From the IMG/VR virus record IMGVR_UViG_3300017971_000190, positions 1 through 64,000 of that record: 64,000 bases of DNA; one strand, 5' to 3'. This document shows positions 1-3,140 of this stretch, piece by piece. The notes beneath the pieces were generated by a model that searched no databases, was not told the origin of the DNA, and was given only the letters and a program-made list of their open reading frames with translations. Numbering within the stretch: position 1 is the stretch's first letter; every line of letters starts with the position of its first letter. Both the position numbers and the translations under genes were made by a program.

Positions 1-212
1 ACAACTGAAATGTAATTGATGTTTGCCTTTGATATGGCTGAGGCCTACGTTGAGTAGGAGAGTTCTACCGGTGGGGTCGGGTACCGGGTAGACAACTGAA
101 ATGTAATTGATGTTTGCCTTTGATATGGCTGAGGCCTACGTTGAGTAGGAGAGTTCTACCGGTGGGGTCGGGTACCGGGTAGACAACTGAAATGTAATCG
201 ATGTTTGCCTTT
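1..212 (+). repeat. 91-bp tandem repeat, 2 full copies plus a 30-bp partial copy
   Basis: 1-91 equals 92-182; 183-212 repeats the first 30 nt with one mismatch; the unit contains hairpins cctac/gtagg and tctacc..ggtaga. Confidence 0.9.
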
Positions 213-213
213 C

Positions 214-333
214 GTGGGTTTACACAGACTGTGGCTCGCAGAATCTGGGGAAGTAATTGGCGGTGAAGGAAGAAAATGAGCTTGGGGCATCTGGTGAAAC
301 ATCCAGACCGACTTTAACTGCCCGCCAACCCAC
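214..333 (+). ncRNA. Unidentified ~120-nt structured RNA, copy 1 (family A)
   Basis: Closed by gtggg/cccac; shares cagactgtggctcgcagaatctg and other blocks with 1307-1426; compensatory helix ttggcgg/ccgccaa. Confidence 0.75.
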
Positions 334-341
334 ATAATTTT

Positions 342-432
342 TGAGGGGCTGATGACGGTCAGAGATTGCGACTTTAAACCACAAGTCGCTAGAATTAATA
401 ACTGTGGGTTCGAGTCCCACCCCCTCGTTCCA
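342..432 (+). tRNA. Aberrant tRNA-like RNA (10-nt anticodon-position loop containing CTTTAAA)
   Basis: Acceptor tgagggg/cccctcg, T-arm gtggg-TTCGAGT-cccac, encoded CCA; helix gcgact/agtcgc has a 10-nt loop. Confidence 0.5.
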
Positions 433-716
433 GCAAGTTCCTAGAACATCTAAGAAGCTGTGATTGTATTGGGTCAGTGGCCTGTGCAGTACACAGTGGA
501 GACGGTTCGTTTAAGGAACGAGCTGCCTTTAGTCGAGATCCCGCGTTGGCGACTAGAGGGTTGGCAGTACCAATGCAGGGGTGCGAGGTGGGTAAGTCGG
601 TCTGGTAGATTTTACCTGTTTGTAATCCAGCGACACCACTTCAATAAATGGGACTAACAGGTCTCAACCATCTTTCGTTGTCACAAGTCGGTTGAGTATT
701 CACAAGATGACAACTA

Positions 717-781
717 GGAGTGAGGACACTAGCTTGAGTGCTTCAACGGTTTCGGCTCAAGTCCATAGCCCTTCTCCGAAA
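717..781 (+). ncRNA. Stem-loop/pseudoknot element (cttgag..ctcaag family)
   Basis: Stem 733-738/756-761; loop tttcgg complementary to downstream ccgaaa 776-781. Confidence 0.4.
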
Positions 782-966
782 AATTGATTGAAAACCGTTT
801 ACGCCTACACGGAGTTGGGGGTTCTACAGTTGTAGGAAGAGCTTAAAAACCCAAAGTAACAGGTGGGGCTACCGGGATGTATCTTTCCCTTTCAGTGTAA
901 GCCTGTTGCGGTAGGGAGAGTGGTGGACACGCTTGCCCCAACCCTCTACCCGAATTTTTCGTTTTT

Positions 967-1233
967 GGTAAATGGAAGGTTGGCCTAAAAGCAGCCATCC
1001 TTTAAAGAGTGAGGCGAAGACCTGTTGCTCGGATTTTTGCTGTGAGAGGCTTGGGTACGGTTAATCTCACAGGTTCCACGCGAGTCAAAAACGTAAAGTC
1101 GCTTTTTACGTAAATAGATTTGGGAGTGGCTCTCCCTAGCGTGCTGAAACAGGAGTACTTTCGGTTAAGTGAGGAGGCACCCCGGAGACGGTAAGGCCGA
1201 ATCCCTCTTTGGCGTAGCAGCACACCATTTACC
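967..1233 (+). ncRNA. 23S rRNA GTPase-associated centre (H43-H44, L11-binding domain) mimic with a 201-nt insertion
   Basis: 975-1010 + 1212-1225 align without gaps to E. coli 23S 1055-1104 (GAAGGTTGGCCTAAAAGCAGCCATCCTTTAAAGAGT|GCGTAGCAGCACAC); closed by a 9-bp stem ggtaaatgg/ccatttacc. Confidence 0.85.
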
Positions 1234-1306
1234 TTTTTCAGCCCCGTACCAAGTGTCCTATGGAGTTCGGGTTTAAATACTCCTCTTGGTACGCATTTTC
1301 AACCTT

Positions 1307-1426
1307 GTGGGTGTACTCAGACTGTGGCTCGCAGAATCTGAGGCAGTAATTGGTAAGAGATGAAGCTAATGAGCTTGACACCTGTAAAATAAGTTGCAGG
1401 GTGACTAAAACTGCTTACCAGCCCAC
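1307..1426 (+). ncRNA. Unidentified ~120-nt structured RNA, copy 2 (family A)
   Basis: Paralog of 214-333; helix changed to tggtaag/cttacca; closed by gtggg/cccac and followed by a T-run. Confidence 0.75.
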
Positions 1427-1514
1427 ATTTTTTGAGTTGCCCCCTAAGCACTGGTCTAACGATCCTGCTTAGGTGATCGGGGAGTGGATGGTACCTGAAG
1501 CTCCCCACTTTTTT

Positions 1515-1601
1515 GGAAGATGAACGGGAAGGCCGGGCATTAGTGCACAGTGTCGTACCGGTTCGACTCCGGTTTGGAAATCCAAGTTCTTGGCATCTTC
1601 C
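1515..1601 (+). ncRNA. tRNA-like RNA with T-arm but rearranged architecture
   Basis: 8-bp closing stem ggaagatg/catcttcc; T-arm accgg-TTCGACT-ccggt followed by an extra hairpin ttgga/tccaa before the 3' strand. Confidence 0.5.
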
Positions 1602-1708
1602 TTGAAAAACCGCCAGAGGAATTACACGTTATAATCTGGCCTCTACAGAGAGTAAAAAATGTGAGGTTGTGAGTGCTTTTCCAAAAACTCTCACCCGACA
1701 TAAGTTGG

Positions 1709-1804
1709 ATTTAGTGTCTTGTGCAGTCATAGATGGGAGGCGTTGAACTCTGGTCACCAGGTTGGAGGGAGCCAACAGTGAAATACCATCCATTGGCATT
1801 AAAT
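1709..1804 (+). ncRNA. 23S rRNA L1 stalk (H76-H78) mimic
   Basis: TGTGCAGTCATAGATGGGAGGCGTTGAA...GGAGCCAACAGTGAAATACCATCC matches 23S ~2109-2179 (UGUGUAGGAUAGGUGGGAGGCUUUGAA...GGAGCCGACCUUGAAAUACCACCC); 10-bp H76-like stem atttagtgtc/ggcattaaat. Confidence 0.85.
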
Positions 1805-1982
1805 TGTATAAATACAACAATTTGTGTTGGGTAATTTTCAGTTGCAACCCCTGGGTTCTGAGGTATTTGCCGGTAGCCTGCAGAACAGGGAAGTCCCGTA
1901 GCCGGATGGGTTTGGTAGTAGAACCTCTGACCCTTTTAATTGAGTCAGTAGCTGTACACTAAGAAAAAACTACCACTTTTTC

Positions 1983-2050
1983 GGAGCCTGTAATTTAAAT
2001 GGAAAAAGAAGCGTTAGCCTATTTCTAGGCTCGAATCCTAGCAGGTTCCT
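1983..2050 (+). tRNA. Degenerate tRNA-like RNA (8-bp acceptor, CTCGAAT T-loop)
   Basis: ggagcctg/caggttcc plus ctagg-CTCGAAT-cctag; D and anticodon arms weak. Confidence 0.4.
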
Positions 2051-2192
2051 TAAAGGGTGTAGTCTCCCTCCTGGGGAAACATTTCCTGGGTTATTTGGCC
2101 ATAAAAGACTACAACGCAAATCGAAAGTGCTTGTTGAATTGATTTGTGTAATCCGAACAAGCAGTTGTGAGTGCTTCTATAAACTCTCATTT

Positions 2193-2296
2193 GTGAGGTT
2201 CCTGGTTGTCCAAGGATGTAAACAGGTGAGTGCTTGGGTGTGTATTCTCGCTCAAGACTGGGCAGGCGAATTGACGCTAGCGAAGCTTGGCCTCAC
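2193..2296 (+). ncRNA. Closed structured RNA
   Basis: gtgagg/cctcac closing stem, internal cttggg/ctcaag stem, followed by a T-run. Confidence 0.4.
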
Positions 2297-2304
2297 ATTT
2301 TTAA

Positions 2305-2414
2305 TCCCTATGATAGAGGATCTACTGATCATTCTAGAACGGTCGGTTGGCAGAAAAAGCTTGTTGGACCCAACTTGTTTTTCTGTTGTCCTGGTTCGAT
2401 CCCAGGATGGGGAA
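2305..2414 (+). tRNA. Aberrant tRNA-like RNA with a very long variable arm and TTCTAGAA loop
   Basis: Acceptor tccctat/atgggga; D-arm taga-gga-tcta; 6-bp stem ctgatc/ggtcgg with a 10-nt loop; variable arm cagaaaaa/tttttctg; T-arm cctgg-TTCGATC-ccagg. Confidence 0.55.
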
Positions 2415-2451
2415 CTAAAGCACTTGGTTGTGAGTGATTCCTAAAACTCTC

Positions 2452-2575
2452 GGTTGTTGGTATACCAGGGTACTAACAATCTTAACACCTGGAAAAGCGT
2501 TTTGGTAGTTATCGTCAATAAATTGCTCTACTTGAGTGACGCCGGGCTCTCCTCAAGTGGTAAAACCCGGCAACC
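2452..2575 (+). ncRNA. Structured RNA with H-type pseudoknot
   Basis: ggttg/caacc ends; stem cttgag 2531/ctcaag 2552; loop gccggg 2541 pairs with cccggc 2566. Confidence 0.55.
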
Positions 2576-2587
2576 TTTTTATTTTTC

Positions 2588-2616
2588 TTGACTTCCTTCT
2601 TTTAGCACAGCATAAT
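2588..2616 (+). promoter_or_regulatory. Sigma70-like promoter
   Basis: TTGACT-17-CATAAT upstream of the ORF at 2649. Confidence 0.55.
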
Positions 2617-2648
2617 AATTGGTGTTAAACAGCTAAAAGGAGTCACAA

Positions 2649-3140
2649 ATGGTGCAGCAACACAAAATCCGAGAAGGCGTCCCCTACACCGATGGTAAAT
2701 CCATCAGAGTTATTGTTGATACTGAAGCTGGGAGTTTTGAGAACGGCACACCCGTGTATTATAGAACCACCCGAGACCTTTTCAAGGAAGTACACGAATG
2801 CTCTTTGGGAGCGTTTGCTCGGTGGGCAACACTGCAACACGAAGAGCTGTCAGATCAAATCGTACTGGCTATTCGCCCAAATAACGGAGCAGATGTTCTC
2901 CCAGACAATCTAGAAACCAGGGTGACAAGGATTTTGAAGACCGAGATTCTGAAAATTGAAGCCGGTTTGGGAACCGTTTCTTTTAATAAAAACGTAATTC
3001 CAGCCAAACTGCTGAGACAGTTGATTCAGGATTACGAAACACTCTACGGCTCAGAAACGCTTAATATCGAAGTAGTTTTCAGTCTTTTCCTTGACGGTGC
3101 GGTGGACCGCACGGAATTCCGGTTTAAGTCTGAACAATAA
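2649..3140 (+). CDS. Hypothetical protein (163 aa)
   Basis: ORF with SD aaaaggag. Confidence 0.75.
   Translation: MVQQHKIREGVPYTDGKSIRVIVDTEAGSFENGTPVYYRTTRDLFKEVHECSLGAFARWATLQHEELSDQIVLAIRPNNGADVLPDNLETRVTRILKTEILKIEAGLGTVSFNKNVIPAKLLRQLIQDYETLYGSETLNIEVVFSLFLDGAVDRTEFRFKSEQ

Follow-up and report, generated by a model that had tools for sequence, protein, structure and literature searches.

Why would a virus carry a copy of a functional center of 23S rRNA, and why would that copy be interrupted in the middle of a helix? These questions are raised by the IMG/VR virus record IMGVR_UViG_3300017971_000190, which is 221,679 bp long and derives from marine sediment or seawater metagenomes; its first 64,000 nucleotides are referred to here as the window. 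Positions 968–1010 and 1212–1232 of the window form a near-perfect look-alike of helices H43 and H44 of 23S rRNA (E. coli 1048–1111), i.e., of the GTPase-associated center (GAC), which is split after U1090 by a sequence of 201 nt (1011–1211). The original prediction, made from the DNA sequence, offered three readings of this insert: an intron, a switch, or an appended domain. It is the appended domain that is supported, by a position fixed throughout a family of relatives, a covarying closing helix, a variable length and interior, and an intact GAC look-alike. In our opinion, 1011–1211 is probably a built-in accessory arm that leaves H44 via a three-way junction and belongs to one stable non-coding RNA spanning positions 968–1232.

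The GAC look-alike and its relatives

Numbering was anchored on the blastn alignment to the E. coli rrlB gene, in which E. coli 1059–1088 and window 979–1008 share 90% identity (E 1e-5); this alignment equates position 1007 with G1087, 1010 with U1090, and 1212 with G1091. Rfam models of large-subunit (LSU) rRNA match the 5′ half of the window copy with 16 bits (E 0.0065, 321 nt searched) and match two relatives more strongly, with 21 and 33 bits. By both blastn and Rfam, the similarity is confined to about 30–55 nt. No LSU rRNA gene was found in the 221,679-bp record. A true 23S rRNA gene with an insertion was dismissed, since the look-alike is not embedded in LSU rRNA and its flanks are tRNAs and open reading frames (ORFs).

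All parts of the look-alike lie on the plus strand. The 5′ strand of the closing, H42-like stem (968–975; E. coli 1048–1055) is complementary to the 3′ strand at 1225–1232 (E. coli 1104–1111). The H43 look-alike, recognized by blastn to 23S rRNA and by the Rfam LSU models, occupies 977–1001 (E. coli 1057–1081), with the 1067 loop at 985–993. It is followed by the junction U1082–A1086 (UUAAA, 1002–1006), which contains the 1082–1086 pair of the GAC fold annotated in the Rfam LSU consensus, and by the 5′ strand of lower H44, G1087 A1088 G1089 U1090 (1007–1010), in which the residues at 1007 (G) and 1010 (U) pair with those at 1223 (C) and 1222 (A), respectively. Beyond the insert, the sequence at 1212–1224 reads as the upper H44 hairpin G1091–C1100 with the 1095 loop, then A1101, C1102, and A1103. 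The split of H44 is thus real, as the original prediction had it: position 1010 is T, the insert 1011–1211 starts and ends in G and sits between GAGU and GCGUAGCAGCAC, and joining 1010 to 1212 gives GAGT followed directly by GCGTAGCAGCAC. The boundary is ambiguous by one base (1011–1211 or 1012–1212), because both flanking bases are G.

The window element is one of 90 distinct relatives: 78 from IMG/VR, 4 from named phages, and 7 from contigs of metagenome-assembled genomes (MAGs). A 21-nt pattern from the 5′ half retrieved 27 IMG/VR loci, a pattern comprising the linker at the end of the insert and the 3′ half retrieved at least 119, and the 90 distinct members are the loci that were parsed with relaxed junction motifs. 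When the 3′ pattern was applied to contigs of cellular genomes, the matches were mostly due to chance; of some 120 loci, 7 proved to be genuine, and these all lie on MAG contigs. A blastn search against GenBank phages revealed the same split arrangement in the Pseudomonas phages Astolliot, UNO-G1W1, pf16, and Milchi, in whose inserts the ends are conserved and the middle is replaced. With the copy of GAP32 as the BLAST query, the family further extends to Cronobacter phage GAP32, Pectobacterium phage CBB, Serratia phage BF, seven Erwinia phages, and Xanthomonas phage XbC2. GAP32, pf16, and Astolliot have one copy each. PA5oct has no copy of the family, and its non-coding RNAs defined by RNA-seq belong elsewhere.

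All secondary pairs of the GAC look-alike, in the closing stem, H43, and H44, are kept. The closing-stem pairs 1048–1055/1104–1111 covary across the family, and so does the pair 1058–1080, which occurs as GC, UA, AU, or CG. The tertiary pair 1082–1086 covaries as well, being U-A in 52, C-G in 27, and A-U in 9 of the 90 members. Because the pairs of the GAC, including this tertiary pair, covary, the rRNA-like fold is, as judged from the alignment, under selection while the arm is present.

Conservation at individual positions was assessed in 46 members. The trinucleotide A1088-G1089-U1090 is fixed in all 46, which were found without any pattern covering it, and the pair 1090–1101 is UA in 43 and UG in 3. 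G1091–C1100 is kept in 46/46 and C1092–G1099 in 45/46, a conservation that is partly forced by the search patterns. The mismatches G1056.A1103 and G1093.A1098 are retained in the family. U1060, G1071, C1072, A1085, and A1088 are invariant, and we take their structural roles to be those seen in published GAC-L11 structures. A1067 is relaxed (A in 39 members, G in 6, and U in 1).

Two kinds of variants are instructive with respect to the relationship between core and arm. Three phage contigs carry a free-standing GAC look-alike, located outside rRNA, without the H44 insert (L030:4350–4420, L262:3150–3215, and L264:1590–1650); their junction is AGU or AAC, 1101 is U or G, and the copy in L264 directly precedes a tRNA-like sequence. 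Conversely, seven members (L037, L077, L092, L110, L113, L131, and L135) carry, beside the H44 arm, a second insert, which lengthens the 3′ strand of H43 between approximately 1077 and 1081 by 20–57 nt. Because both insert-less versions and members with a second insert exist, the core is, on this comparison, a constant element that works without the arm, and the additions sit at tolerated points.

Closing helix, linker, and interior of the insert

The insert directly follows A1088-G1089-U1090 in 90/90 members. Because the same position is used in 90 distinct relatives, the insert of the window is more than a chance occurrence. The inserts measure 36–369 nt (median 132), and 65/90 inserts are shorter than 200 nt. 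These figures bear on the intron reading, in which the insert would be a self-splicing group I intron with its 5′ splice site at U1090, a terminal G at 1211, and a guide sequence, GCUC, at 1027–1030. Features in favor of this reading do exist in the window: U is the last base of the upstream exon and G that of the insert, and a GCUC that could pair with GAGU is present; moreover, insert-less versions of the mimic are found in other phages. The U before the insert is at the same time the invariant U1090 of the mimic. Across the family, however, the pattern expected of group I introns is lacking. The last base of the insert is A in 14/90 members, so the terminal omega G is not fixed. RCUC is not enriched near the 5′ end: 7 of 30 non-redundant inserts have it in their first 40 nt, compared with 5.6 expected. 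The smallest natural group I introns measure approximately 200 nt; inserts as short as 36, 64, and 85 nt are found here. No core is shared by the inserts past the closing helix. The Rfam model Intron_gpI, suggested as a check in the original prediction, has no match at E≤10 in window positions 1–3000 or 940–1260, nor in the two longest inserts to which it was applied, those of the relatives L011 (313 nt) and L012 (304 nt). A group I intron is rejected on these sequence grounds, and we consider it extremely improbable.

The insert is closed by a helix, designated P-ins, whose strands in the window are GAGG (1011–1014) and CCUC (1204–1207). Covariation supports this helix in the 90 sequences. 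The first pair is GC in 87/90; the second is GC in 42, AU in 36, UA in 8, and CG in 2; and the third is GC in 34, CG in 30, AU in 10, and UA in 5. The fourth pair is kept in 56/90 and the fifth in 11/46. Among the non-redundant sequences, the second and third pairs are formed in 30/30 and 29/30, respectively, and none of 10,000 permutations (0/10,000) reached the observed pairing.

Within P-ins, the arm of the window has its own three-way junction, which can be followed through a subfamily of 19 members. P-ins is connected to the next helix, Pa, by the junction strand CGAAGA (1015–1020), in which C-R-A-(A)-G is conserved in the subfamily alignment. Pa (1021–1153) is formed by the helix cctgtt/aacagg (1021–1026/1148–1153), which encloses three hairpins: 1040–1072 (ctgtgaga 1040–1047/tctcacag 1065–1072), 1091–1111 (acgtaaa 1091–1097/tttacgt 1105–1111), and 1122–1136 (gggag 1122–1126/ctccc 1132–1136). 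These inner hairpins are lineage-specific and are seen only in the window; in 17/19 subfamily members, the site of the Pa helix is taken by a helix of 6–10 bp, of differing sequence and in the same place. The junction strand 1154–1170, between Pa and the next helix, Pb, ends in a conserved AAGU, of which AGU is (nearly) invariant in the alignment.

Pb (1171–1203) is the conserved 3′ module of the arm, defined by an RNAalifold consensus with compensatory changes and by column tallies. It comprises pairs 1171–1172/1202–1203, a 3x3 purine loop (1173–1175/1199–1201), pairs 1176–1178/1196–1198, a bulged A at 1179, the pair 1180/1195, a UAA bulge at 1192–1194, and the helix 1182–1184/1189–1191 capped by GAGA (1185–1188). 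Evidence for pairing in this module includes two covarying pairs and a 3-bp helix with one compensatory GC-to-CG change; in relatives, the hairpin cap is GAGA, GAAA, or UAAC. The module is conserved in Pseudomonas phages. Other subfamilies carry unrelated arms, with no common core beyond the closing helix. The only recurring word in the inserts is GGUAA(GG), which is present in 15 of 30, against 5.8 expected, an approximately 2.5-fold excess that is not universal. Another candidate, that the insert is a second piece of 23S rRNA, was rejected, since a blastn-short comparison of 46 inserts with E. coli 23S rRNA gave chance 8–14-mers only.

The original prediction described the insert as highly structured. 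The complementary segments that it listed, including ccg-GAGA-cgg (1182–1191), are all present, and comparative support was obtained for 1011–1014/1204–1207, for cctgtt/aacagg, and for ccg-GAGA-cgg. Folding energy does not show this: the minimum free energy (MFE) z-score of the insert is +0.12 and that of the whole element −0.84, i.e., neither is more stable than shuffled sequence. Because the folding energy is unremarkable, the claim that the insert is structured rests on comparative evidence.

As a self-contained, helix-closed domain at a defined point, the arm could also be a segment that is cut out by host or phage nucleases, leaving a two-piece GAC, or one whose ends are rejoined by the putative RNA ligase of this phage that the original prediction mentions. 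There is a precedent: intervening sequences of rRNA are known to be removed without religation, and RNase III removes them from 23S rRNA. The geometry of the closing helix speaks against such a fate. P-ins has only 3–5 Watson-Crick pairs before loops or mismatches are reached, far from a long duplex of the RNase III type; no bulge-helix-bulge is formed, and AGU and UUUR are both found at one end of P-ins. A cut would, furthermore, leave lower H44 with two pairs only, and the internal architecture conserved in 19 members suggests that the arm is used rather than discarded. We regard excision as improbable and infer, from sequence comparison, that the arm is not removed by splicing or cleavage. 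Two specific candidates of this kind were also set aside: an archaeal or tRNA-type intron, because the two opposite-strand 3-nt bulges around a 4-bp helix are absent, and an RNase III-processed intervening sequence, because a long near-perfect basal duplex is absent.

From the closing helix, the chain returns to G1091 through a linker, which in the window is UUUG (1208–1211). The linker that follows the closing C is UUUG in 76/90 members and UUUA in 14/90, and UUUR is likewise present in 25/25 distinct members found by the 5′ pattern, which is linker-free. It should be noted that CTTTR was required by the 3′ pattern, so that a compensating linker could have been missed. The linker invites a different reading, anticipated in the original prediction, which pointed out that ctcttt (1205–1210) is complementary to aaagag (1004–1009). 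According to this reading, the 3′ end of the arm (C-UUU-R; here CUCUUUG) would pair with U1083–G1089 and keep the GAC junction disrupted; a signal or a partner would then allow P-ins and the GAC fold to form. A 7-bp alternative helix (UAAAGAG/CUCUUUG) is indeed found in both the MFE and the centroid structures of the window; C-UUU-R is complementary to UAAAG in most members, with R able to pair with U1083; and the conservation of the linker is otherwise unexplained. The relatives, however, do not follow the window. Only 5/46 members adopt the alternative helix in their MFE structure, the junction pairings in the MFE structures are inconsistent across the family, and covariation is lacking. Within the closing helix, j2 and j3 vary in step with i2 and i3 and do not keep to complementarity with A1088 and G1089, so that the helix available family-wide shrinks to AAAG/CUUU. 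The linker stays UUU whatever base 1086 is (A, G, or U): it is retained when 1086 is G (27 members) and when 1086 is U (11 members), where a U-U apposition would break the helix; base 1086 tracks 1082 instead, as the GAC fold requires. A 4-nt return strand would also be about as long as needed to cross a helix end at a three-way junction. As far as the alignment goes, alternative pairing of AAAG with CUUU does not account for the conserved linker. The switch, weakened by the comparison, is not favored and in our estimate unlikely.

Possible function and comparison with known systems

In the accessory-arm reading, the chain leaves H44 right after U1090, enters the G-C-opened helix 1011–1014/1204–1207, and forms the three-way junction of the arm, with Pa bearing a lineage-specific tip and Pb a purine-rich loop and a GAGA cap; it then returns to G1091 through the 4-nt UUUG linker. 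Because no unpaired bases intervene between C1100 and A1101 on the opposite strand, the upper and lower parts of H44 can stay stacked, in which case the arm would exit sideways and the GAC would fold with the arm in place. The RNA would be made together with the phage tRNAs. Since the element abuts tRNAs of the same strand at distances of 3–20 nt, the enzymes that process tRNAs probably release it as well, and the simplest view is that of a stable RNA freed from transcripts of the tRNA type.

In isolation, the GAC domain is the classical high-affinity binding site of uL11, a protein required for the activation of RelA. An abundant GAC copy would titrate uL11. The RNA is probably a decoy for a binder of the folded GAC, with uL11 as the most likely target and a GAC-directed toxin as the alternative. 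A decoy for translation factors is argued against by the relaxed A1067 together with the lack of a sarcin-ricin-loop (SRL) partner. As for the arm, it probably stabilizes the RNA or provides a further binding surface that evolves fast. More speculatively, the element may be, in phages of many lineages, a trans-acting, near-exact GAC copy with the fast-evolving H44 arm as its business end, and may represent a new class of RNA-based takeover or counter-defense factors; we put this forward as a tentative idea only. Under this idea, the GAC part would capture uL11 and blunt RelA-dependent alarmone signaling, or, alternatively, would absorb a host toxin, e.g., an H44-modifying ADP-ribosyltransferase of the type of Tre23, which modifies H44 at 1095–1098 (PMC8661411). 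The arm, for its part, would recruit, hide from, or inhibit a second, lineage-specific partner.

Several results weigh against the accessory arm and the role proposed for it. MFE folding recovers the closing helix in only 1/46 members, and for this reason the support for that helix is comparative only; when the whole element of the window is folded with nearest-neighbor energies, UAAAGAG/CUCUUUG is preferred to P-ins. For the conserved UUUR linker there is no demonstrated structural explanation, and parts of the 3′ half and the linker (CTTTR) were built into the search patterns, which makes some of the invariance a product of the search. A phage-encoded uL11 or bL12 was not found in the record, which is estimated to be 63% complete, and an SRL look-alike is absent from the window and from 481 kb of family loci. 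Because there is neither an own uL11 or bL12 nor an SRL look-alike, nothing in the genome points to a partner. A RelA/SpoT homologue was likewise not found in the record.

Comparison with known RNAs helps to place the family. With the GAC of 23S rRNA (H43–H44, the L11-binding or ‘thiostrepton’ domain, E. coli 1051–1108), the phage RNA shares helices, junction, and loop sequences. It differs from the rRNA domain in that it is free-standing, closed after about 8 bp, and located in tRNA arrays, and in that it has a constant A1088-G1089-U1090 and A1101, an arm of 36–369 nt at 1090/1091, and sometimes a second one in H43. Like rRNA expansion segments and intervening sequences, the arm is a helix-closed addition of variable length at a fixed point, which differs even among close relatives. 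Unlike expansion segments, it is located inside a helix strand, via a three-way junction and a fixed 4-nt linker, rather than at a hairpin tip; unlike the intervening sequences removed by RNase III, it has a closing helix that is too short. We know of no expansion segment or intervening sequence at 1090/1091 of cellular 23S rRNA. The likeness to group I introns of phages and rRNA consists in an insert within an rRNA-like phage sequence, preceded by U and, in the window, ending in G; the catalytic core, the size floor, and the fixed terminal G of such introns are missing from the phage inserts, and no conserved guide sequence is apparent.

The leaders of ribosomal-protein operons (e.g., the L10 leader) also copy a protein-binding site of rRNA outside the ribosome and thus provide a precedent for a ribosomal-protein decoy. 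These leaders, however, are cis-regulatory parts of mRNA, cellular, and partial mimics, whereas the phage RNA is stand-alone, near-complete, and without an adjacent regulated gene, and the element has no Rfam match to any ribosomal-protein leader. With phage tRNA arrays and tRNA-like decoys, it shares the genomic setting and the strand; it is not a tRNA fold and instead copies a piece of large-subunit rRNA. In its working, the element resembles an rRNA mimic or viral decoy RNA, and in its looks an expansion segment grafted onto such a mimic; should the arm turn out to act as an effector, the family may form a class of its own.

In Rfam, the whole element belongs to no known family, and the insert matches neither group I introns nor any other family. 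A full-text search, which covered the open-access literature and does not prove novelty, found no published description of a phage GAC-like RNA. A family of stand-alone phage GAC RNAs, encoded among phage tRNA genes, has thus apparently been undescribed so far. If the reading given here is true, a large RNA family, unannotated or mis-annotated as small ‘hypothetical proteins’, is present in jumbo and other large phages of six genera (Pseudomonas, Cronobacter, Pectobacterium, Serratia, Erwinia, and Xanthomonas) and in many uncultured ones. It would also follow that there are two points, 1090/1091 and the 3′ strand of H43, at which the L11-binding domain can accommodate large additions, which would be useful to rRNA engineering and to an understanding of the GAC fold. 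Finally, the family would offer a testable case of a virus copying a functional center of the ribosome as a separate RNA, with several of the carriers in culture.

Genomic setting and annotation

Genes for tRNA are present within 1 kb of the element at 34/47 loci. All of these tRNAs (130/130) are on the element's strand, and many are only 3–20 nt away. The copy in the window lies in a 2.6-kb non-coding island with tRNA-like pieces. The sequencing runs found to hold its sequence are all DNA metagenomes. No protein is a conserved neighbor of the element, the largest ORF clusters spanning 3–4 closely related loci. In one relative (L016), ARAGORN places a tmRNA gene approximately 19 nt downstream of the GAC look-alike.

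The MAG contigs that carry the element are assigned to Acidimicrobiales (L153), Ruminococcus (L158), Saprospiraceae (L159), Chloroflexota (L196), and an uncultured bacterium (L176); the other two are L252 and L258. The density of 15–20 tRNAs per 8 kb in the contigs L158 and L176 suggests that DNA of a phage or prophage was binned with them.

GenBank records leave the element without annotation or have small ‘hypothetical protein’ coding sequences (CDSs) running over it on the opposite strand. Examples are L002:1572–1679 (UNO-G1W1 CDS0126), L004:1422–1553 (Milchi CDS0161), and L260:2505–2797 (GAP32, intergenic). The ‘hypothetical protein’ CDSs over the element are probably annotation artefacts.

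Further features were noted in the record and in the non-coding part of the window. Outside the window, at C1:77372–77515, there is a borderline MazG-like ORF, a 129-aa frame that scores 22.1 bits where the cut-off is 22. Window positions 343–426, ~1530–1580, ~2000–2050, and ~2340–2410 hold tRNA-like pieces with T-arms of the GGTTCGAnTCC type that were not called by ARAGORN or Rfam; one tRNA-like piece has a weak match to tRNA-Sec (23 bits). At 1727–1796, there is a weak match to the c-di-GMP-II riboswitch (21.8 bits against a gathering score of 53.5), which is probably due to chance.

Several repeated elements are also present. At the very start of the record (1–212), a 91-nt unit is repeated 2.3 times, as two 100% identical copies and a 30-nt start of a third; possible explanations are a terminal repeat, an effect of the assembly, and a small RNA present in several copies. 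A 71-nt element occurs once on each side of the GAC look-alike, at 214–284 and 1307–1377, the two copies being 82% identical; each lies inside a long GTGGGT...CCCACAT hairpin that is followed by a T-run, and the pair is probably another small-RNA family. Lastly, a hairpin formed by GTTGTGAGTGnTTn and AAACTCTCA occurs in three copies across the non-coding island (1666–1696, 2164–2194, and 2427–2457), which are possibly processing or termination signals.

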